This document shows positions 29,212 to 59,575 of a stretch of DNA of 64,000 nt, one piece after another. The stretch comes from Phaeosaccion multiseriatum. Its lineage: Eukaryota > Protista > Ochrophyta, other classes. The notes under the pieces are model-generated. The model ran no database searches and was not told the origin of the DNA. It worked only from the letters and a program-made list of their open reading frames with translations. The first letter of the stretch is position 1. Each line of letters starts with the position of its first letter. The stretch is from positions 5,924,964-5,988,963 of the forward strand of contig OZ218951.1 in assembly GCA_965112735.1 (NCBI GenBank), written 5' to 3'. A program made the position numbers and the translations under genes.

Positions 29212-31469
29212 ATGCCTCTCTCCGCCGAGCGTAAGACCTGGTACTTCGGCCGCCTTAAGGAGCTGCTGGAGAACTACTCCAAGATCTTCATCGTCAGCGC
29301 AGACAATGTCGGATCCAAGCAGGTAGGGAACCCATCAAACCCTAGCTCTCTTCTCCTGCCCCCCCCCCCCTCCCGCCCCTCCCCTGTAGGCTCTTACCCT
29401 GAGCTACCTTGGCCCTTTCCCTCCCTCAACTCTCAGATGGCCAACATCCGCTTCCAGCTGCGCGGCCACGCCGTCGTGCTCATGGGAAAGAACACCATGA
29501 TGCGCAAGGTCAGTGTCTGGTGTCAGTCAGTGCCTGGTGCCAGTCAGTTGCCTTTGACCATGGGGCTCCACGATGCGCTCCACGTTCTCACATGTGCAGC
29601 TGGCCTCATTCTTCCTCCGCCCTGTTTTGTCTTTGGTCTTTGGTATCTGCCCACCCTGAGCAACAACCATCCTATACCCACCCTCAACGCTTCTGTATCA
29701 CCAACTCCTGCCCCTGATTCCCCCACCCCACAGGTTCTCAACAGCTTCCTGAAGGAGAACCCCGGCCACCCCTACGAGCAGCTGCTGGACGTGATCAGGG
29801 GCAACATGGGCTTCATCTTCACCAACGGAGACCTCACCAAGGTCAGTACAGTGCCAGGGCCTCCCCCCCCCTTTCCCTCTCTCCCCTTCCTCTCTTTCAG
29901 TTTCTTAGGTGACTTGTATGAATTAAATCAGTAAATAGCCCCGTACCTCACCTGCACTCTCTAACCCGACGTGCTTGTGCTTGTGCTGTGCTTGTGCTGT
30001 GCTTGTGTGTCCTCAGATCAAGGACGTGATGGAGGCGAACCGCGTGCCCGCCCCTGCCCGAGTGGGATCCCTGGCCCCTGTGGATGTCAAGGTGCCCCCC
30101 GGCCCCACGGGATGCGACCCCGGACAGACCTCCTTCTTCCAGGTGGGTGGAGGTGTGGGGAGTGTGAGGAGTTTCAGTGCTGGGTGTCGGGACCGGGCGA
30201 CGCAGGCCATCACAGGTGCTTATGAGGCGTATGAATGTGCTCCGTACTAAGCTCCGCCTCCGTCCGTGCTGCTGTTGCCCCCCCCCCCTGCTGCTCCCTG
30301 AAGGTGCTTCAAGTGCCCACGAAGATTACCCGCGGACAGATCGAGATCACGGCCGAGATGCATCTCATCAGCAAGGGAGACAAGGTGAGGCACCAGAGCA
30401 GTGGCACGGCAGTGGATCGGCAGTGGATGAGTGTGATGCGACCTTTTATGTCGTTGTCTTACCCCCTTCCGTTTCTTGTTGCCTTCCTAACTTGCTCACA
30501 GGTCGGATCCTCCGAGGCGGCTCTGCTGCAGAAGCTGGACATGTTGCCCTTCTCGTATGCGCTTGTCATCAGCTCCGTCTACGATAACGGTGAGCAGAGG
30601 AGGGCGAAGGGAGGGGGGAAGAGAGGGCAGTCTTAGGGAGAGGTGGTTCGCTGACTTGGTGCATGGTTTGACGCGATTGACTTGGCTGCGCTGTCCAAGA
30701 GCAGAGGGGCCGCCTCCGGGCAAGCACTCCCGCCCCTGTTCCTGTTCCAACTTGGCGCTAGACGAACGGACTTGGCTCCTCCCGATGCGTTGGCTTTGTT
30801 GCTCTGAGACGCTCCCCCGTCTGTGCGACACCTCGCGTCTTCGAAGGGAGGCACAGTTTGTTTTCCCTTCGTCTTGGTCTTCTTTGGTCTTCCAGTTTCG
30901 CGCTTCGCGTTGTTGACTCAAGCGTTCCTCTCTTCCGCTCTTTTGCCCGCTGCTGTCGCCATCTGACCGCTCTGCACGCACACGCACGTCTCCTCTGTGT
31001 AGGCTCTCTGTTCGACGCCGCGGTGCTGGACCTGACCCCTGAGGACCTCACGAATCGCTTCAAGAAGTGAGTCGTGCGGCATGTCCTAATGCCTGTGAGG
31101 CTGTTTTCTCTGCCTTCTTCGTAAGTCTTTCCCTTACTCACGTCTCTCTCTCTCTCTCTCTCTCTCCTCTCTCCCTTCAGCGCTGTGCGCAACGTGGCTG
31201 CGGTGTGCCTCGAGCTCGGGTACCCCACCCTTGCGTCCCTGCCCCACTCCATCGGCAACGCCTTCCGCACGCTGGTGGCGGTGGCTGTGGAGTGCGAGAC
31301 GTTCACCTTCGAGAAGGCCACGCCCTACAAGGTCAGTGGGATGGGGAGATGGACCGGGCGGGGTGAGGGGTGGCCTCCATTTTTCGTTCTTTTGCTCTTC
31401 ACTGTTCCGCCTCTGATTCTGTATCGAACAACCGTGCGTGTTTCTTCGCAGGAGGCCCTCGCTGCCTAG
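29212..31469 (+). CDS. RPLP0: 60S acidic ribosomal protein P0 (uL10), 9 coding exons, 272 aa
   Basis: Exons 29212-29322, 29437-29508, 29734-29841, 30017-30142, 30304-30384, 30502-30589, 31003-31066, 31181-31331, 31452-31469 total 819 nt. Motifs [64 protein letters not shown]. Confidence 0.95.
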
Positions 31470-32505
31470 GCACAAGCTGGTGACGGTCACGGGACCCCAG
31501 GGACGGCGGGGTGGAAGCAGTAGCAGGGGCGGAGCGGGAGCGCGGCGGGCGCTGTTTCCAGGGGTTGGCAGAGTGTAGGCAGAGCAGGCAGAGCAGAGCT
31601 GTCTCTGCGACCATACGCCTCTATCGCCCGAGAGGGGTCGACCAACGCTACGCGTTTTAAGACGGTTAAAGAGGCACTTGTTGTCTGAAGAGCTTGTCTC
31701 TCTCTCTCTCTCTCTCTGTGCCGTCACGTCTCTCTCGTATTCTTCTTCATTTCCCGGTTGAGATTTGCCGATTTGCCCATCGGATTGAGGGTTTCCAGGT
31801 TGCCGTAGCCCAGTATTTGCAGGTTGAGTCACCTCGAACGAAAAATAAAGAGGGAATATGGCAGCTAAGCAGCATCACAGGCGCTGTAAGGCTCTGCTCA
31901 TCAAAATGGTGGCCTCCATGGCCCTTGTGGCGCGGAGTACCGTGTGCTTCGCCGGGCCCCCGACCTTCGGCATTGACAGAAGTGGCAGTCCGAAAACAGC
32001 CCCTTGCACGCATGGCGCGACCCCCCCCCATGAGTGTGGCGGCGAGACGAGGCGGCAGAGCCCGAGGAGGATGCAAGCAAGGAGGGGTGCTTTTGCCGGG
32101 CCTGTTGCTGCTGCTGCGCGGAGAAGAGGGAGGGCACTGCCCAGAAGGGGCCGCGCCGGCCTGGCGATGGTGCCTTCGGGTGTGGGCAGTGGGAGGTCAG
32201 AGGCTGAGTCAGACGTGGCGGCGGCAGAGGCGGCGGCGGCGTCGGGGCCAGACTCTCCTATTCAGATCGAGCAGCTGGCAGAGGCGGCCAAAGCAGCCGC
32301 CCTGGCGATCGCTGCAGCCGCCACGGACACCGTCGCCGCCAAGGTAGCGCAAGCAGCAGCGCAGGCAGTGGATGCGGCCGCTGCAGATGAAAAGACGGCG
32401 GCGAGGGCAGCCACGGTGGCTGGAGCGACAGACGCAGCATGGGAACCCACGCCCGCGGGGGCAGGGCCGACTGCCACAGATGCGGAGAATGATGAGGCCG
32501 AGCCA
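30496..32505 (+). repeat. Segmental direct duplication, copy 1 (RPLP0 exons 6-9 + intergenic + 5' part of next gene)
   Basis: Near-identical to 35341-37295. Both copies start at tcacaggtcggatcc and part after gatgaggc(c/t)gagcca. Confidence 0.95.
30688..30858 (+). ncRNA. Candidate intronic H/ACA box snoRNA in RPLP0 intron 6
   Basis: Hairpin 1 (gcg..ccaag..aggggc / gcccct..cttggcgc), H-box AGACGA (ANANNA) at 30760-30765, hairpin 2 (cctccc/gggagg, gatgcg/cgcgtc, tgttgc/gcgaca, agacg/cgtct), then ACA+3 nt at 30853-30858. Confidence 0.45.
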
Positions 32506-33396
32506 ACCCAGAAGCAGCAGCACGAGGCGGCGGCACCGCAGCCCCGCTCCATCCGCGGCCCTGACCTCCGCAGGTCCGACCCCGATCTTTGGGATATCCT
32601 GCAGTCGGAGAGGGGGCGGCAGAGGCAGTCGCTGGAGCTCATCGCCTCTGAGAACTTCGCCTCCAGGGCGGTGATGGAGGCGCTCGGCAGCCTCATGACC
32701 AACAAGTACAGCGAGGGCACTCCGGGGGCGAGGTGAGGGAAGAGTGGATGGGTAGATCGGGAGGGAGGGGGAGGGGGAGAGAGGGGTGGGGAGGTAGATA
32801 GAGACGGACAGAGGGATGGTGTTGGGAGAGGAGACAGAAACGACAGCGAGGTGGTGATGGGAGGGGAGAGATGCAGACGAAGGTGGTGTGCCATGCTGCC
32901 AATCCAATGAGATGAGCTTGCTTTGGAGGGCAGGGCATCTGTGTGCCCTGGGGTGCACGCATGTTGTGTGTGTGTGTGTGTTTGTGCTTGAGACAATTGT
33001 CCAACACAGCCCCATCGCTACCCCCACCCCCCTCCCGCCCCCTGTCGATGTGAAGGTATTACGGCGGCAACGAGTTCGTGGACCAGATGGAGCGCCTCTG
33101 CCAGGAGAGGGCCCTCACGGCCTACAGGTTAGACCCCGAGGAGTGGGCCGTCAACGTGCAGCCCTACAGGTACGGGATGGCAGTGGATGGGGGGGAGGGA
33201 AGGAAGCGCGCGTCTGTCTTGTGTCATCCCATCCTCCGCCCCCTGGCCCCTGGCCCTTGTTTTGGTTTGCTTCTTTGCTCAGTCTGTGGCGCGCGACAAA
33301 CCTTCCAACTTGCCCGCCTCATGTGTATCTCTCTTCTTTCGTGGGCCTCTCTTATGGGTATGTCTGTGTCTCTCTTCTGTCTCTCTCTCTTCTCAC

Positions 33397-33436
<40 letters not shown>

Positions 33437-34752
33437 TTTGTCTCTCTCTCTCTCTCTCTTCTCAGCGGCTCCCCCGCCAACTTCGCTGTGCTGACGGCCC
33501 TTCTCGAGCCTCACGACCGAGTCATGGGCCTGGACCTTCCCTCGGGAGGGCACCTGACGCACGGCTACTACACCGCTAAGAGGAAAGTCAGCGCCACGAG
33601 CATCTACTTCGAGAGCCTGCCCTACCAGGTAAGTCGGGCCTTCAGTTCTGTAAGCTCGGCGAGCAGCGGCGAGCATGCAGGCAGACAGACAGGTAGACAG
33701 TCAGACAGGTAGAGGACAGGCAGATATGAGTCGCTTACGCACCCTCCGCCGTGCCCTCTTCGCTGCTCATCAGCCCGCCCCCCTTCCCCTGCCCCCTGCA
33801 ACGCCCCAACGAAGGTGGATGCCGAGACGGGGCTGATCGACTACGACGCTCTGGAGCAGCAGGCCGTGCTCTTCCAGCCGAAGCTCATCATGGCCGGGGC
33901 CAGCGCGTACTCCAGGGATTGGGACTACGCCCGAATGCGCGCTATCTGTGACAAGGTGGGTGCCTACCTCATGACGGATATGGCGCACATCAGCGGGCTC
34001 GTGCTCGCGGAGGAGGCCAACGACCCCTTCCTGCACAGCCACATCGTCACCACCACCACACACAAGAGCCTCAGGGGGCCCAGGGTACGTTCTTTGTTGT
34101 TGTTGTTGTTGTTGCTGTTGCTGTTGTTGTTGTTGTGCTGTGTATGTGCGGGCGATGCTTTCTTCTGGTCTTGGTGCGGCCACTGGCAGTCTTTTGTGCT
34201 ATTCCTTCCTTCGTTTTGCCCCCGATGCCTCTTACCCCCCCCCCCTCCCCTGTCCCCAGGCCGGCATGATCTTCTGCCGCAAGGAGCTGCAGGCTGCCAT
34301 CGACTTTGCTGTGTTTCCGAGCCTGCAGGGAGGGCCTCACAACCACCAGATACTCGCACTCGCCACCGCTCTGCATGAGGCCACCACAGAAGACTTCCGG
34401 GCATACATCAGACAGGTTCGTGGGGATTGGTTGGGTGGCTGATTGGGGCTTCTGCCCAGCAACTTCACTTCCCGTCCTGCAAGTGCTTTTCGTGTGTGTG
34501 ACCCCATCCCATGCCGTGTATCTCGCGTACCCCGTGTTTGCGTGAACCCCGCGGCGCTACAGGTGAAGAAGAATGCCCAGGCGCTCTCCTCGGCTCTGCA
34601 GGAGCTGGGCTACACAATTGTGACCGGCGGCACGGAGAACCACCTCGTGCTGTGGGATCTCCGGCCGCAGAAGCTGACGGGGTCCAAGCTCGAGGCCCTG
34701 CTGGAGGAGGTGAGAAACACTCTGAGAACGATCTTTGGGAAAGTTGCAATAT

Positions 34753-34790
<38 letters not shown>

Positions 34791-35297
34791 CCACCCCTGC
34801 TTGTGCCCCGCCCTGACCCCCTGTTCTTGTCCATGGCTTTCATCGCGAGCTTCGCCGGCAGTGACGATAGAAGAGCCGCGAGTGCTTCCTGCAGCGGGCT
34901 GACCCAACTTACCACTTGTTCGCACTCCTCCCAACACGTTTGCTCTTATTCTTATCCTCCCCATCCGCTGCCCCCCCCCCCAAAGACCTCCATCACCGTC
35001 AACAAGAACACGGTGTTCGGCGACAAGAGCGCCCTCTCCCCCGGAGGGGTGCGGTTGGGCACGCCCGCCATGACCACGCGGGGCCTCAAGGAGGGGGACT
35101 TCCGAAGGGTTGCCGAGCTCCTGCACAGGGGGGTGCAGGCCGCGCTGAGGATACAGGACGAGGCGGAGAGTAGGAAGCTCACGGACTTCAAGGCTGCGCT
35201 GCAGAAGGAGGTGGCGGCGGAAGGGGAGGAGGGGCAGGTGGGGGCGTTGCGAAAGGAGGTGCGCGACTGGTGCGAGACGTTGTACTTTCCCGAGTAG
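31858..35297 (+). CDS. SHMT: Serine hydroxymethyltransferase with a long N-terminal extension (probable organellar/plastid targeting)
   Basis: Exons 31858(or 31906)-32732, 33056-33169, 33466-33628, 33815-34084, 34260-34415, 34563-34709, 34986-35297. Motifs [72 protein letters not shown] (PLP Lys), [24 protein letters not shown]. Confidence 0.95.
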
Positions 35298-35340
35298 GGA
35301 AGTGTGAAGTCAGGGTGGGGGCATGCAGGCAGCCGCAGTA

Positions 35341-37295
35341 TCACAGGTCGGATCCTCCGAGGCGGCTCTGCTGCAGAAGCTGGACATGTTGCCCTTCTCG
35401 TATGCGCTTGTCATCAGCTCCGTCTACGATAACGGTGAGCAGAGGAGGGCGAAGGGAGGGGGGAAGAGAGGGCGGTCTTAGGGAGGAAGAGGTGGTTCGC
35501 TGACTTGGTGCATGGTTTGACGCGATTGACTTGGCTGCGCTGTCCAAGAGCAGAGGGGCCGCCTCCGGGCAAGCACTCCCGCCCCTGTTCCTGTTCCAAC
35601 TTGGCGCTAGACGAACGGACTTGGCTCCTCCCGATGCGTTGGCTTTGATGCTCTGAGACGCTCCCCCGTCTGTGCGACACCTCGCGTCTTCGAAGGGAGG
35701 CACATTTTGTTTTCCCTTCGTCTTGGTCTTCTTTGGTCTTCCAGTTTCGCGCTTCGCGTTGTTGACTCAAGCGTTCCTCTCTTCCGCTCTTTTGCCCGCT
35801 GCTGTCGCCATCTGACCGCTCTGCACGCACACGCACGTCTCCTCTGTGTAGGCTCTCTGTTCGACGCCGCGGTGCTGGACCTGACCCCTGAGGACCTCAC
35901 GAATCGCTTCAAGAAGTGAGTCGTGCGGCATTTCCTAATGCCTGTGAGGCTGTTTTCTCTGCCTTCTTTGTAAGTCTTTCCTTTACTCACGTCTCTCTCT
36001 CTCCTCTCCTCTCTCCTCGTTCAGCGCTGTGCGCAACGTGGCTGCGGTGTGCCTGGAGCTCGGGTACCCCACCCTTGCGTCCCTGCCCCACTCCATCGGC
36101 AACGCCTTCCGCACGCTCGTGGCGGTGGCTGTGGAGTGCGAGACGTTCACCTTCGAGAAGGCCACGCCCTACAAGGTCAGTGGGATGGGGAGATGGACCG
36201 GGCGGGGTGAGGGGTGGTCTCCATTTTTCGTTCTTTTGCCCTTCACTGTTCCGCCTCTGATTCTGTACCGAACAACCGTGCGTGTTCCTTCGCAGGAGGC
36301 CCTCGCTGCCTAGGCACAAGCTGGTGACGGTCACGGGACCCCAGGGACGGCGGGGTGGAAGCAGTAGCAGGGGCGGAGCGGGAGCGCGGCGGGCGCTGTT
36401 TCCAGGGGTTGGCAGAGTGTAGGCAGAGCAGGCAGAGCAGAGCTGTCTCTGCGCCCATACGACTCTATCGCCCGAGAGGGGTCGACCAACGCTACGCGTT
36501 TTAAGACGGTCAAAGAGGCACTTGTTTCGACTTGTTGTCTGAGGCTTGAGGTTGGTTTTTGCCCGCGTCGGAATGAGGGTTTCCAGATTGCCATATTTGC
36601 AGGGTGAGTCACCTCGTCCTAAAAAAAGTGAGAAAGAGATGAACATGGCAGCTAAGCAGCAGCATCGCAGGCGCTGTAAGGCTCCGCTCATCAAAATGGT
36701 GGCCTCCTTGGCCCTTGTGGCGCGGAGTGCCGTGTGCTTCGCCGGGCCCCCGACCTTCGGCATTGACAGAAGTGGCAGTCCGAAAAAGGCCCCTTGCACG
36801 TATGGCGCGACCCCCCCCCATGAGTGTGGCGGCGGGACGAGGCGGCAGAGCTCGAGGAGGATGCAAGCAAGGAGGGGTGCTTTTGCCGGGCCTGTTGCTG
36901 CTGCTGCGCGGAGAAGGGGGAGGGCACTGCCCAGAAGGGGCCGCGCCGGCCTGGCGATGGTGCCTTCGGGAGTGGGCAGTGGGAGGGCAGAGGCCGAGTC
37001 AGAGGTGGCGGCGGCAGAGGCGGCGGCGGCATCGGGGCCAGACTCTCCTGTCCAGATCGAGCAGCTGGCAGAGGCGGCCAAGGCAGCCGCCCTGGCGATC
37101 GCTGCAGCCGCCACAGACACCGTCGCCGCCAAGGTAGCGCAAGCAGCAGCGCAGGCAGTGGATGCGGCCGCTGCAGATGAAAAGACGGCGGCGAGGGCAG
37201 CCACGGTGGCTGGAGCGACAGACGAAGCATGGGAACCCACGCCCGCGGGGGCAGGGCCGACTGCCACAGATGCGGAGAATGATGAGGCTGAGCCA
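35341..37295 (+). repeat. Segmental direct duplication, copy 2
   Basis: Aligns by eye to 30496-32505 with scattered substitutions and with indels concentrated in the intergenic part. Confidence 0.95.
35347..36313 (+). pseudogene. RPLP0: 5'-truncated RPLP0 duplicate (last four exons with introns)
   Basis: Exons [14 protein letters not shown]..., [15 protein letters not shown]..., [16 protein letters not shown]... and EALAA* are repeated with no upstream exons. It starts ~50 bp after the SHMT stop. Confidence 0.85.
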
Positions 37296-37808
37296 TGGGA
37301 AGCAACCGCGCTGGCGGTGGCTGCAGCAGCCATGGAGAACGCCGCCGCTAAGATAGAGAAGGATACAGAGGCGGCAAAAGCAGAGGGGCAGGCGGCGATG
37401 GATTCGGCCTCACGGGAAGCGGGGAAGGCGATAAAGGTCAAAGCAGCAGAGCTGGGGGTGACTCCAGGAGAACTGGAGCAAAAAGAGGTCGAGGCAATAC
37501 TCAAGCCGGCGTTAAAGGCGACCTCCGCACACGAACTGATGATGATTGCCGCCATCATGGAGAGGGCGTCCTCTATTGTCGCCAAGGCAGCAAATGCGGC
37601 GGCGGAAGAAGCGGGGGCGGTGGTGGCGGCGAACGTGGCAGCCAGGGCAGCAAGAGATGCTGGAGCCGCCACCGAGGCACCAGTGGCGGGGGCGGACCGG
37701 GAGGAGGAGGAGGAGGAGGAGGAGGAGGAGGAAGAGGAGGAGGAGGAGGAGGGAGGAGGAGGAGGAGGAGGAGCAGCAGCAGGAGGAGGAGGAGGAGGAG
37801 GAGGATAG
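36639..37808 (+). CDS. Ala/Glu-rich hypothetical protein ('gene X') sharing its N-terminal ~215 aa with SHMT; probable signal+transit peptide
   Basis: Intronless ORF. The N-terminus is nearly identical to the SHMT extension (MVASLALVARSAVC-FAGPP), followed by a unique Ala-rich helical region and a poly-Glu tract. The C-terminal frame is uncertain within (GAG)n. Confidence 0.6.
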   Translation: MNMAAKQQHRRRCKAPLIKMVASLALVARSAVCFAGPPTFGIDRSGSPKKAPCTYGATPPHECGGGTRRQSSRRMQARRGAFAGPVAAAARRRGRALPRRGRAGLAMVPSGVGSGRAEAESEVAAAEAAAASGPDSPVQIEQLAEAAKAAALAIAAAATDTVAAKVAQAAAQAVDAAAADEKTAARAATVAGATDEAWEPTPAGAGPTATDAENDEAEPWEATALAVAAAAMENAAAKIEKDTEAAKAEGQAAMDSASREAGKAIKVKAAELGVTPGELEQKEVEAILKPALKATSAHELMMIAAIMERASSIVAKAANAAAEEAGAVVAANVAARAARDAGAATEAPVAGADREEEEEEEEEEEEEEEEEGGGGGGGAAAGGGGGGGG

Positions 37809-38515
37809 AGGGGGGAGGATGAGGGGAGAGGACACGAGTCTAGATAGAATAGATGCAGAAAGGTTTTAATTATAAGGCGTGGGTAGAAACAGCGCGAAAA
37901 CCAGAGCCAAGAGCGGCCAGGCAGATTCAGATAAAAAATATGCAGTATATATATATAAAAGGAAATTGAGATCAGAGAAGGCGGCAGAGTGCAGTGTACT
38001 CGCTGTTCCCTGCAATGACAGACCTCCTTCCCTCTGCATCTGCCCGGTCGAGAGTGGCAGCTTCTTGGCCTTTGAATAATTTAAGGCCGTGCAATGCCCG
38101 GCTTGTGTATCTATCACCTGACTTATCATTGCCGCCGCCTCTGTGGCTCAATGTGCCGATATCCCTTTGCCGCGGCTCTTTGAATGACTCATTTCTGGAA
38201 CAAGCTCTGCCGCCGACGCTGCAAGCGCTGCTATCTCTCCGCCATAAGAACCCAGTCCCATCTCCTCTTGGCAGTGCTATTGACACTCCAAATCCCCCCC
38301 CCTCCTCCCTGCACTGTCTGTGCAATTTTTACACAATATTTGTCTTGCCGTAAGCCCTTGGTACGGTTTCCCTGGCACCGGACTGAGCACCGACCACCAC
38401 ACGTCGCTGCCTTCGTCACCCCGCCTCCTTCCCCATGTCATCTCTGCATCCTCCCCTCCTGCCCTTCTGATGTTGGCGGACGGCCATGCGCACGCCCCCC
38501 AGCCGCCCCATCCAC

Positions 38516-40719
38516 TCACTCGCGATTCTTGACGATGACGTGGACTTGATCGGGCTGCACATTTTTTTGGGCAGTTGGTGATTCGGCAGAAGAAGGAGGA
38601 GGGAAGAAGACGGGGGGGAGAGATGGTGAGAAGGGGACGAGCAGGGCGGCAGCACGTACAGGCACGCACCCCCAGAGCGAAGGATGTGACGGCGCGTGTC
38701 TTAGGCTTGGTCTCGTCGGGGCGCACGTCGAAGCGCTTGAAGATGCCCGCCAGCGCCGCCACGGCCTCAAGCTGAGCCATCTCCTGGCCGGGGCAGCGCC
38801 GCACTCCGCCCCCAAAGGGCGTGGCGTGCTGCGGCTTGTGGTTCACCGTCGTCGTCGTCACGGCAGGCGCGCCACGCGGGGATAGCGCCAGGAGAGCCTC
38901 CTCGCGCTCCTCCTGCGAGAGCCAGCGCTCGGGCACGAAGTCGAGTGGGCGGCTGAAGTTGGCCTCGTCGCGGGCGATTATACCCAACAGGCAGAACACC
39001 ACAGAGCCCTGCTCGAGGTGGGTCCAGAGAAGAATAATGAGAACAAAGCAATACTCTTGTCGCAGGAGCGTTTGAGTAGGCACGTGACCGTGCTCGCACA
39101 GGAGTAGCCGTGCATCCGAGTGGAGGAGGGTGGGTGGGGGAACGAAATACGCACCTTGGGTCTTACCCTCCCGCTGGGCAGAGTCGTGTCCGACAGGGCC
39201 TGCATAGCCAGGTTGGAGGCGGGGCCATACAGTCTGAGCGTCTCGTGCACCACGGCCTTGGTGTAGCGCAGGGCCTCCAGCTGCTCGAAGCTGTCCGGCA
39301 GAGCGCCTGGAGAGGGCCCCAGCATACTGTCGAGCTCTCTCTGGAGCTTGCGCTGCTTGTCGGGGTTGGCGGCGAGCAGGCTCACTGCAAAGGCGCAGGT
39401 TGCACCCGTGGTGTCCCGCCCTGTGTGTTTGGTGTTGACGAAGCAGGGGAGGGAAAAAGCAGGAAGGCGTCAGACAACAGGAAATAGCCCCCCGCACAAG
39501 CACGACGCTCAGTCTTGCTCAGGCCAAGTGCAAGCCCCACAGGCGCGGCGCTCACCTGCGACGAGGAAGCTCTTGAGCTGATGGAGGATAACGGTGTCGT
39601 GAGCTTTCTGCTCCTTGGCAGAGAGCTTCTTGCGATCTGCTTGCTCTACTTGCTGGACCATCTTCCTCAGCAAGACCCCCGTTCCCCCATCAGTCGCCTC
39701 GTCTCCTCCGTCACCACCACCGGTGCTCTTCACGCCATCCCCGTGTTGCTTCTCCCCCTCGACTGTCCCATCCTTGTCTGTTCTGGCTGCGTCCAGGAAA
39801 GTCTGCATGAGGTGCTCAACGTACGCATCTGCCTCCAAGAACGCCTTCTTTCTCGGCATGAGGAAGGACAGCGCCTCCGGCACCACCTTCCACTGCATTG
39901 CAAAGAGCGGATCGAAGAGGAGACTCTGCATCACTCCGAAGTACGCCTCCAGTGCGGCGGAGGTCTTGGTGTCCGGATCGTCGGTGAAAGCGCGAAGGTC
40001 GTGGGAAAAGCCAATCTGGGGACCACGTGAATGAGCGTGTGCAGGTTCAGGAAGGAGTAGAGTATGCCATGTCGACATCCATTGCAAACTCCTCGCCCTC
40101 CTTAGCCCATACGTGCGCATCATATGCTTACCTTTACAGTGGTTGCGGTGAAGAGAGTGGTGAAGCTTTCCTTCGCATCCACCCTCCCCCCGGGAGCGGC
40201 AGCCCACACACCCAGCATCCTCCGCACCATCTCATTCACCGTCGGGCAAATGACGCGAATGTTCTTGTGCAAAAACCCCGAGGAGATGAGCCGTCGAGTC
40301 ATTCCCCACTCCTCTCCTTCGGCTCCAAACACGCTCTTCTCCAATCCCTTCGACACAGCCTGGAGCGCCTCCCATCTTCGAAATACCTTGGGTCGCTTGC
40401 TGAGTACAAACGCCACGTCGACGGGGTTCGTTACGCAAACAGTTGCGTATCCTCCAATGTTGAGGTCGTATTCGCCCCCGAAATGCTTGTGCCAATACTC
40501 GAGGTAAGTGTGTATTGTAGAGAGGTCCTTGATCATGCCCAGATGACCACCGAGAGGGCCCAGCCAGCCAGGCAGACCGGGTGGGCTATTTCGCTGTTCT
40601 TTCAGAGAGGATGAAACGCTGCGCCACACGACTAGCATGCAGAAACAGGAAAGAGAAAAAAATATCCGTCCCCATGGCACCTCCCCCGTCGCCAGGGAGT
40701 TGCTGACAAGCCACCCCAT
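38516..40719 (-). CDS. Cytochrome P450, paralog A (5 exons)
   Basis: N-terminal TM + PPGLP hinge; I-helix FLVAG|RDTTGAT; K-helix HETLRL (ExxR); FVPERW; heme motif PFGGGVRRCPG; last exon PDQVHVIVKNRE*. Confidence 0.92.
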
Positions 40720-58654: not shown

Positions 58655-58984
58655 CTGCTCAGATGTGAAGGAAGAGCGGGGGTAAAGGGAGCATGGTAGC
58701 TTTATGTGAGTGTACCAGAGGAAAAAGACCCTACAGATTCGATTGTTTCATCCCTTTCCTTCAACGCATCACCTGAAGAGAAGCTCTCTTGTCCCCAGAG
58801 GTATCATTTCTGGTTCCCTGCGTTCAATGATACGCTAGCGTTGTTATTCGTCGTCTGTAGATCTGTTACTATTGTGAAGTCTATGAACCATTCCTGGCCT
58901 CAAAATCCTCAGAACATACTGTCCGTTACAAAAGCTTCTCGGAAGGATTAGGAGGTGAAAACAAGGTGAGTCAGGTGGAAAACG

Positions 58985-59575
58985 CCCGAATATGGGGGAA
59001 AACGGACGTCTTTGACGCCCGAATATGGGGGGAAACATGCGTTTTGACTCCCGAATATGGGGGAAAACGGACGTCTTTGACGCCCGAATATGGGGGGAAA
59101 CATGCGTTTTGACTCCCGAATATGGGGGAAACATGCGTTTTGAGTCCCGAATATGGGGGGAAACGGACGTCTTTGACGCCCGAATATGGGGGAAAACGGA
59201 CGTCTTTGAGTCCCGAATATGGGGGGAAACATGCGTTTTGAGTCCCGAATATGGGGGGAAACGGACGTCTTTGACGCCCGAATATGGGGGAAAACGGACG
59301 TCTTTGACGCCCGAATATGGGGGGAAACATGCGTTTTGACTCCCGAATATGGGGGGAAACGGACGTCTTTGACGCCCGAATATGGGGGGAAACATGCGTT
59401 TTGAGTCCCGAATATGGGGGAAAACGGACGTCTTTGACGCCCGAATATGGGGGGAAACATGCGTTTTGACTCCCGAATATGGGGGAAAACGGACGTCTTT
59501 GACGCCCGAATATGGGGGAAAACGGACGTCTTTGACGCCCGAATATGGGGGGAAACATGCGTTTTGAGTCCCGAA
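58985..59575. repeat. Telomere-associated minisatellite: 18 units of two variants (A ~33 bp, B ~32 bp) plus a partial unit
   Basis: A = cccgaatatggggg(a/g)aaacggacgtctttgacg; B = cccgaatatggggggaaacatgcgttttga(ct/gt). Order ABABBAABAABABABAAB. Confidence 0.95.

Follow-up and report, generated by a model that had tools for sequence, protein, structure and literature searches.

A duplicated presequence in front of an SHMT gene: a preserved case of probable presequence replacement at a subtelomeric locus of Phaeosaccion multiseriatum

As summarised in PMC7488351, duplication of an existing targeting signal provided a presequence for rice mitochondrial rps11 (Kadowaki et al. 1996) and for the plastid rpl32 of Populus, which became part of a duplicated gene for Cu-Zn superoxide dismutase (Ueda et al. 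2007). In the diatom Thalassiosira oceanica, the transit peptide of the nuclear PETF gene is encoded by an exon of its own, for which LI818 is the proposed donor (PMC3022921). Here we describe a locus of the alga Phaeosaccion multiseriatum (Ochrophyta), found in a window of 64,000 nucleotides (the whole stretch analysed; positions 5,924,964 to 5,988,963 of contig OZ218951.1, forward strand, assembly GCA_965112735.1), in which a serine hydroxymethyltransferase (SHMT) gene begins with 216 codons that it shares with its downstream neighbour, here called gene X, and lies between the two copies of a 2.0-kb direct duplication that also contains the 3' end of the ribosomal protein gene RPLP0 (uL10). 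We favour the explanation that this is a genuine local rearrangement, by which the presequence of gene X was duplicated onto a plastid-type SHMT whose own presequence it replaced, and give it a probability of about 0.68. As a route of presequence gain this is already known, and the locus is a clean, well-preserved further case.

As with rps11 and rpl32, the 5' part of a pre-existing targeted gene is present in duplicate and one copy is followed by an unrelated coding sequence, the donor persists, and there are two products with a common presequence. The locus differs from these two in that the recipient is an intron-containing nuclear gene and not a new transfer from the organelle, and in that this recipient probably had a presequence of its own, so that a replacement would have taken place. 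Moreover, the two parts are fused in frame within one exon and not by way of an intron, approximately 100 residues of the donor's mature part appear to have been carried along, and the flanking duplication with its orphan ribosomal-protein fragment is still intact. Like PETF of T. oceanica, the case concerns a complex-plastid (heterokont) alga and a plastid tag proposed to have been taken from another plastid-protein gene by duplication; whereas the donor there was suggested from similarity only and the module is a separate exon, donor and recipient are here adjacent, 97% identical over 2 kb and have their junctions preserved. In common with other plastid-type SHMTs of complex-plastid algae, with which it groups in a phylogenetic tree, the protein has a complete SHMT domain. 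The N-terminal extensions of those proteins comprise approximately 45-70 residues and are unrelated in sequence, in contrast to the approximately 240 residues found here.

A repeat scan and local alignment recovered the upstream copy of the duplication (D, 30496-32505) and the downstream copy (D', 35341-37295) which agree at 1912 of 1973 aligned positions (96.9%), and between them an intact SHMT core of seven exons (32506-35340), all on the forward strand. These are exactly the boundaries that an initial annotation made from the sequence had proposed for a repeat - SHMT core - repeat structure. D starts within an RPLP0 intron, 6 nucleotides before the end of the intron (30501) and just before its AG, the left junction reading ...acttgc|tcacag in D and ...gcagta|tcacag in D', and its right end follows ...gagcca. 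It contains the functional last four RPLP0 exons, the RPLP0 3' untranslated region (UTR), approximately 220 nucleotides of intergenic sequence and 5' UTR, including a promoter-proximal/5' UTR block (31684-31857) with a (CT)n tract, and, from the ATG at 31858, the 216 shared codons (31858-32505), where approximately 215 had been estimated. D' carries the orphan RPLP0 3' fragment (exons from 35347, stop codon at 36311-36313), the counterpart of the promoter-proximal block (36527-36644) and, starting with an ATG at 36645, the shared region in a version of 217 codons. As had been read initially, the upstream frame continues across 32505/32506 (junction J2) as ...AEP|TQKQ... into SHMT, while the downstream frame continues across 37295/37296 (J4) as ...AEP|WEAT... 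into an Ala/Glu-rich open reading frame (ORF), gene X, reading WEATALAVAAAA. The third junction, between the core and D', lies at 35340/35341 (J3). A blastn search of the 64-kb window yielded no additional copies of D, the core or the part of gene X that follows the shared codons (Xc). Six introns are retained in the core and the RPLP0 introns in D', which places the event at the DNA level, in agreement with the first proposal.

The coding sequence of the chimeric SHMT (31858-35297) consists of seven exons (31858-32732, 33056-33169, 33466-33628, 33815-34084, 34260-34415, 34563-34709 and 34986-35297), which have GT..AG borders, are supported by a spliced RNA contig (record 17) and sum to 2037 nucleotides in frame with no internal stop codon; the 678 encoded residues comprise 216 shared and 462 SHMT residues. 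Each of the exons scanned (1 and 3-7; exon 2 was left out) matched the Pfam SHMT family PF00464, with E values from 5e-9 to 9e-42, at profile positions 2-56, 106-154, 150-238, 303-349 and 365-398 of 399, positions 57-105 remaining uncovered with exon 2 unscanned. Exon 2 was 78% identical to SHMT homologues, and all seven exons matched full-length homologues in local blastp searches. The lysine of the SHMT TTTTHK motif binds pyridoxal phosphate, and this T-T-T-T-H-K motif is present in exon 4. The core starts with 24 non-conserved or weakly conserved codons, which are likely to be a remnant of the SHMT's own presequence, continues with the whole SHMT domain and its six introns, and ends with the stop codon (35295-35297) and 43 nucleotides of 3' sequence before the start of D'.

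Gene X (36645-37808) consists of the shared N-terminus and Xc (37296-37808), the latter coding for about 130 Ala/Glu/Lys-rich residues (131 codons) followed by a poly-Glu/poly-Gly tail encoded by a (GGA)n tract. Over the 216 shared codons, the two copies differ by 12 amino acids and one extra codon. The shared N-terminus is laid out as a basic n-region with a hydrophobic stretch (residues 1-30), a basic part rich in Ser, Thr and Pro up to approximately residue 112 and an acidic, Ala-rich, helical part (residues 113-216). Residues 1-20 have a net charge of +5, and the Kyte-Doolittle maxima of the hydrophobic stretch (2.1 in D, 2.3 in D') are lower than the 2.6-3.4 of five SHMT homologues compared. 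A putative cleavage region, read by eye, is ...RSTVC|FAGPP in D and ...RSAVC|FAGPP in D', with Phe directly after the site, where heterokont presequences with the ASAFAP-type motif have an aromatic residue, usually Phe; residues 41-100 are predicted to be disordered, have a net charge of +13 and are rich in Ser, Thr and Pro, as in transit peptides, and the acidic part begins at about residue 113. Its weaker hydrophobic core aside, the shared N-terminus does look like a heterokont bipartite plastid presequence, and the reading as signal peptide and transit peptide proposed initially (VC|FAG) would fit the sequence. If cleavage occurred near residue 110, approximately 100 residues of the helical acidic region of X would stay on the mature SHMT. 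Within 36645-36690, the D' copy has one Arg codon more, another in-frame ATG two codons further upstream (MNM...) and a Leu-to-Pro exchange in the hydrophobic stretch (KALLIK to KAPLIK); these differences might weaken the signal peptide of X relative to the SHMT copy.

A single-sequence structure model of X (mean predicted local distance difference test score 58, and thus only a rough guide) contained helices at residues 2-31, 112-129, 135-191, 217-269 and 279-344, disorder at 32-110 and a linker at 192-216. The fusion point falls at the end of this predicted disordered linker, which would be a harmless place for joining two proteins. Relatives of gene X were found neither with Pfam, nor by word search, nor with HMMER over 1.84 billion representatives (with the shared part included in the query), nor in the ESM Atlas. 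The match between Xc and the shared N-terminus claimed initially held for composition, with an alanine content of 35-39%, and did not extend to alignment: the best local alignment scored 69 against 71 +/- 8 in shuffles and no repeat unit was common to the two parts. Their likeness is compositional only.

Six public sequencing runs were found by one search, and four of them were compared with the locus over 32300-37500. Run X5, which comes from another sample and study than the DNA-like runs described below, is evidently RNA. Its 1511-nucleotide contig is fully explained by positions 32476-35389 minus six GT..AG introns, so that it reaches from 30 nucleotides before J2 to 49 nucleotides past J3; the SHMT transcript continues for at least 49 nucleotides into the orphan RPLP0 fragment. 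A second contig from this run (record 19) crosses J4, and a third (record 18) starts 14 nucleotides upstream of the part common with 36641 onward and carries D-type letters. RNA depth over the promoter block of D' (36476-36640) was essentially zero, which indicates that X has its own transcription start and is not read through from SHMT. Both fused genes are transcribed. The promoter that the two genes had been supposed to share is common to them in a loose sense only: nowhere do the copies differ more than in the block just upstream of the ATG, where mismatches amount to about 12% and indels to 64 nucleotides.

Which of the two genes was the donor can be asked of the junctions: if X provided the presequence, J2 is the true seam and J4 is ancestrally continuous, whereas with the reverse polarity J4 is the seam and J2 is continuous. 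The GC content at third codon positions (GC3) was 0.667 in the 216 shared codons of D (0.58 in the last 50 of them), 0.677 in the 217 shared codons of D' and 0.641 in Xc, compared with 0.883 in the SHMT core, 0.89 in the first 19, poorly conserved codons of the core, 0.88 in RPLP0 and about 0.7 in ordinary long ORFs of the window. A two-segment likelihood scan of the chimeric coding sequence placed the GC3 change point at codon 216, that is at base 32506 and at J2, with a log-likelihood gain of 21. By Fisher's test, GC3 differed between the D coding region and the core (p = 8e-11), while D' and Xc did not differ (p = 0.56), and hence there is no step at J4. Alanine makes up 39% of the Ala-rich part of D and 35% of Xc, compared with at most 19% in every other ORF of at least 180 amino acids in the window. 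Low-depth contigs (2-4x) of a plant metagenome (run X6), about 3-5% different from the locus, cover exons as well as introns of SHMT, the 3' part of RPLP0, the shared sequence and Xc, with J2 and J3 outside their coverage, and show that a close relative lives on or with plants. In the Xc of this relative, which is approximately 4-5% diverged, four of the five listed differences are synonymous third-position changes, suggesting that Xc is a constrained coding sequence and not a former untranslated region. GC3 and alanine content, with the change point at 32506 and no step at 37296, thus favour the polarity of the initial annotation, in which RPLP0 followed by X is ancestral; that X was the presequence donor, whether or not the SHMT was already plastid-directed, we consider probable.

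The reverse polarity survives best among the alternatives. According to it, an SHMT with a long extension was ancestral beside RPLP0, and a copy of D was inserted 43 nucleotides past the SHMT stop codon, making X a newborn chimera. It requires the same number of breakpoints, it accounts for the orphan status of X, as a young gene is expected to lack relatives, the GC3 of Xc (0.64) is near the base composition of non-coding sequence, and SHMT relatives do bear plastid-type presequences. It would, however, allow a GC3 break anywhere in the extension, and the break lies exactly at 32506; the 131 codons of Xc would derive from 3' UTR or intergenic sequence, yet they are as rich in alanine as the shared part and unlike the other ORFs of the window; most of the listed changes of Xc in the diverged relative are synonymous; and the SHMT domain of relatives starts after approximately 45-70 residues, compared with approximately 240 here. 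We therefore regard the reverse polarity as unlikely. Other places in which an ancestral arrangement might be seen gave little: the best exon-1 match in the protein collection was 65% identical, so that no close SHMT relative was present there; two codon-degenerate patterns, the first taken from close to where the shared region ends and the second from the C-terminus of SHMT, had 0 matches each in scans of Joint Genome Institute (JGI) metagenomes; and two distant SHMT relatives (L001 and L002) had no RPLP0 neighbour, which is uninformative at such distance.

To place the captured enzyme, its seven exons were compared one by one with 120 proteins obtained by an exon-1 search. The best match, P0006, was 70% identical over all exons, and the SHMT domain was 63-70% identical to signal-peptide-bearing homologues from MMETSP, Tara and Logan data, including P0006, P0014, P0083, P0085 and P0016. 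Ten of the twelve closest homologues have a hydrophobic, signal-peptide-like N-terminus, several of them with Phe, Trp or Tyr at the likely cleavage point (e.g. ...GIEC|FHF, ...NAAS|FAS and ...VVVS|FRA). These ten have 67-91 residues before the ELIASEN motif and forms without a hydrophobic N-terminus 24-69, with at most 32 in short cytosolic-type SHMTs such as P0013 and P0089. The core of the chimeric SHMT has about 42, more than the short cytosolic forms, which fits a leftover of an earlier transit peptide. In a maximum-likelihood tree, the window SHMT was sister to P0006 (Shimodaira-Hasegawa-like approximate likelihood ratio test, SH-aLRT, 91) within a group of all ten signal-peptide-bearing proteins (SH-aLRT 93). 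The presequence itself has no counterpart among the relatives: the N-termini of the 14 best matches are unrelated to it in sequence and much shorter, and of the approximately 240 residues that precede the SHMT domain here, 216 are those in common with gene X.

The comparison bears on the proposal that an enzyme was re-targeted, which would hold if X was indeed the donor and the captured SHMT was cytosolic or mitochondrial and became plastid-directed only through the presequence of X. Two of the twelve best homologues (P0013 and P0089) have short, non-hydrophobic N-termini and scores that are only slightly lower, and the support of 93 for the signal-peptide-bearing group is not decisive. The window SHMT is nevertheless sister to P0006, which together with nine more of the twelve closest proteins has a signal-peptide-like N-terminus, and its core keeps approximately 42 residues before ELIASEN, compared with 24-32 in the short forms, as an older presequence remnant would. 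A change of location is therefore quite improbable, and the initial suggestion of re-targeting is not upheld: judging by its nearest relatives, the captured SHMT was most probably already plastid-directed, so that its presequence would have been replaced and the enzyme would not have been sent to a new compartment.

Two runs from one sample (X1 and X2, sample S1) cover introns and spacers and are hence DNA-like. At J2 and J4, contigs of these runs span the junction and include 37 letters of shared sequence; at J3 they extend exactly 30 letters beyond it, one below the tool's bridging rule, as expected of 31-letter words at the edge of a two-copy region. Both versions of the shared coding region, assembled in separate contigs, were recovered, at depths of 110.6 and 93.3, and the core contigs had depths of 89-103; each version is thus present once per core copy and not at half that depth, as alleles would be. 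A misjoining of haplotypes or of a collapsed repeat, so that the order D-core-D' does not exist in the cell, could draw on the approximately 3% difference between D and D', plausible between alleles, and on S1 being possibly the source of the assembly, and it is very unlikely given that contigs were found at all three junctions, that J3, the sole junction unique to the duplication, is present in the S1 contigs and is passed by 49 nucleotides in the spliced RNA contig, which stems from a different sample and a different study, and that both versions of D have the depth of the single-copy core.

Under the favoured reading, in which the presequence of X was duplicated onto a plastid-type SHMT, RPLP0 would ancestrally have preceded gene X, which would be specific to the lineage and code for an Ala/Glu-rich helical protein with a long N-terminal presequence. 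A 2.0-kb tandem duplication would have reached from 6 nucleotides before an RPLP0 exon, across the RPLP0 3' end and the promoter of X, to codon 216 of X, and a genomic fragment of 2.8 kb from a plastid-type SHMT gene, with one end within the SHMT's own presequence and the other 43 nucleotides after the stop codon, would have been placed in frame between the two copies. The most likely route would be a replication template switch or break repair that produced the structure in one step. Upstream, the first 216 residues of X would thereby have been fused through a disordered linker to a complete SHMT, with a transcript continuing into the orphan RPLP0 fragment; downstream, gene X would have remained intact with its own transcription start. 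As a consequence, the bipartite presequence of the SHMT would have been swapped for that of X, together with approximately 100 residues of the mature helical region of X. The structure, its three junctions in independent read data, the splicing and transcription of both genes, the compositional break at 32506 and the signal-peptide-bearing relatives are observed, and the polarity, the one-step mechanism, import into the plastid and the copying or moving of the SHMT piece are inferred.

Several points weigh against this reading. The polarity is argued from composition, with no outgroup, and low GC3 combined with much alanine might also be expected of two sequences that are young independently of each other, instead of one old gene; the shared part and Xc have no similarity beyond composition (alignment at shuffle level). 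X has no relatives in all collections searched, the closest SHMT is only 70% identical, and the donor SHMT locus was not seen. The SH-aLRT values of 91 and 93 are below the tool's threshold of 95, and the set of hits was chosen by similarity to exon 1. The signal and the transit peptide are putative, being read from sequence features. Finally, all read evidence consists of contigs, which indicate presence and cannot show absence or exact transcript ends.

Divergence between the two copies of the duplication is uneven. It amounts to 0.9% in the left RPLP0 part (30496-31154), 1.7% in the right RPLP0 part (31162-31682) and 3.3% in the shared coding region (31868-32505), the promoter block (31684-31857 compared with 36527-36644) having been measured over 31660-31860 and 36504-36647 with the identical flanks included. 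A fragment that is 99% identical beside a diverged spacer suggests gene conversion on the flanks or a mutation-prone, (CT)n-containing spacer. The claim that the event is recent was consequently found not to be secure, since divergence along D ranges from 0.9% to the indel-rich promoter block; a recent event is plausible but not established. Strain-specific gene conversion, considered on the basis of contig variants, was rejected: although X1 and X2 derive from a single sample, they differ in the variants retained at 35648 and 36835-36917, so that the contigs evidently drop one of two similar paths. The shared coding region has a synonymous divergence (dS) of 0.054 and a ratio of nonsynonymous to synonymous divergence (dN/dS) of 0.47; for the Ala-rich part taken separately the ratio is 0.24 and for the presequence part 0.94, values that derive from very few changes (10 and 11 substitutions in all). 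Because of this difference, and with the few changes in mind, one may think of the Ala-rich region as a functional module for placement or assembly in the plastid, which would bring SHMT to the same site as X, with the copies kept alike by gene conversion and such duplication recurring in the genome as a means by which unrelated plastid proteins come to have N-terminal modules in common; we regard this as doubtful. No transposon signature was found, since neither the core nor either repeat unit is bounded by terminal inverted repeats and their ends show microsatellite complementarity only, and no microhomology was visible at 35340/35341 or 32505/32506 against the intact flanks, the donor sequence not being in hand.

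The 5' part of RPLP0 (29212-30495), with exons 1-5 and the greater part of the intron that ends at 30501, is unduplicated, and the peptides of its exons match the P0 protein. The last four exons, in D, are located at 30502-30589, 31003-31066, 31181-31331 and 31452-31469 (stop codon included) and are separated by canonical GT..AG introns; the exon sequence 31185-31331 matches residues 219-262 of P0 chains with solved structures in the PDB (E = 7e-12). The protein ends in ...FEKATPYK followed by a spliced last exon, EALAA-stop (stop codon at 31467-31469), of which a copy is found at 36296-36313. The Ala-rich linker and acidic C-terminal tail that solved P0 proteins have in common with P1 and P2, approximately 50 residues, are absent from RPLP0, and no downstream frame encodes an acidic tail; the solved P0 chains used for comparison extend to 311-318 residues. 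RPLP0 is highly expressed, its own mRNA being approximately 100 times more abundant than the SHMT message. Its orphan fragment in D' is now the sequence downstream of the SHMT stop codon. RNA contigs of run X5 cover part of an RPLP0-derived intron of D' (35490-35700) at a depth of 54-95, with the D'-type letter at 35648, and may represent unspliced SHMT 3' UTR or a stable intron RNA. A search of this intron for RNA families gave no Rfam match, and its predicted fold was no better than that of shuffles. Splicing of the RPLP0-derived introns within 35341-36480 would leave exon junctions in the 3' UTR of the SHMT message, and such junctions can trigger nonsense-mediated decay in many eukaryotes.

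The SHMT/X locus is subtelomeric, lying 22-29 kb from the start of a (TTAGGG)n telomere repeat of 4.4 kb that extends from 59576 to the last base of the window (64000) and is preceded by an array of approximately 17.7 copies of a 33-nucleotide satellite (58982-59556). Subtelomeric regions are known for segmental duplication. On the reverse strand, a long ORF convergent with gene X (38277-39503) contains the sequence FGGGVRRCPG, which by eye resembles the cytochrome P450 haem-binding motif, and a 561-residue antisense ORF (35987-37672) runs across D' and Xc. The latter is most likely a by-product of GCN codon periodicity in the Ala-rich sense frame and no gene.

A change of the address tag of an organelle protein is usually inferred long afterwards from faint similarity, whereas here donor and recipient stand side by side with all breakpoints readable, an orphan piece of a ribosomal-protein gene marks the footprint of the event, and both products are transcribed. 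With the enzyme probably plastid-directed already, the case illustrates the turnover of presequences and not a new location of the enzyme. The locus lets one ask whether a heterokont bipartite presequence can be transferred as a unit, whether SHMT tolerates a long additional domain at its N-terminus, and what the fate of such duplicates is.

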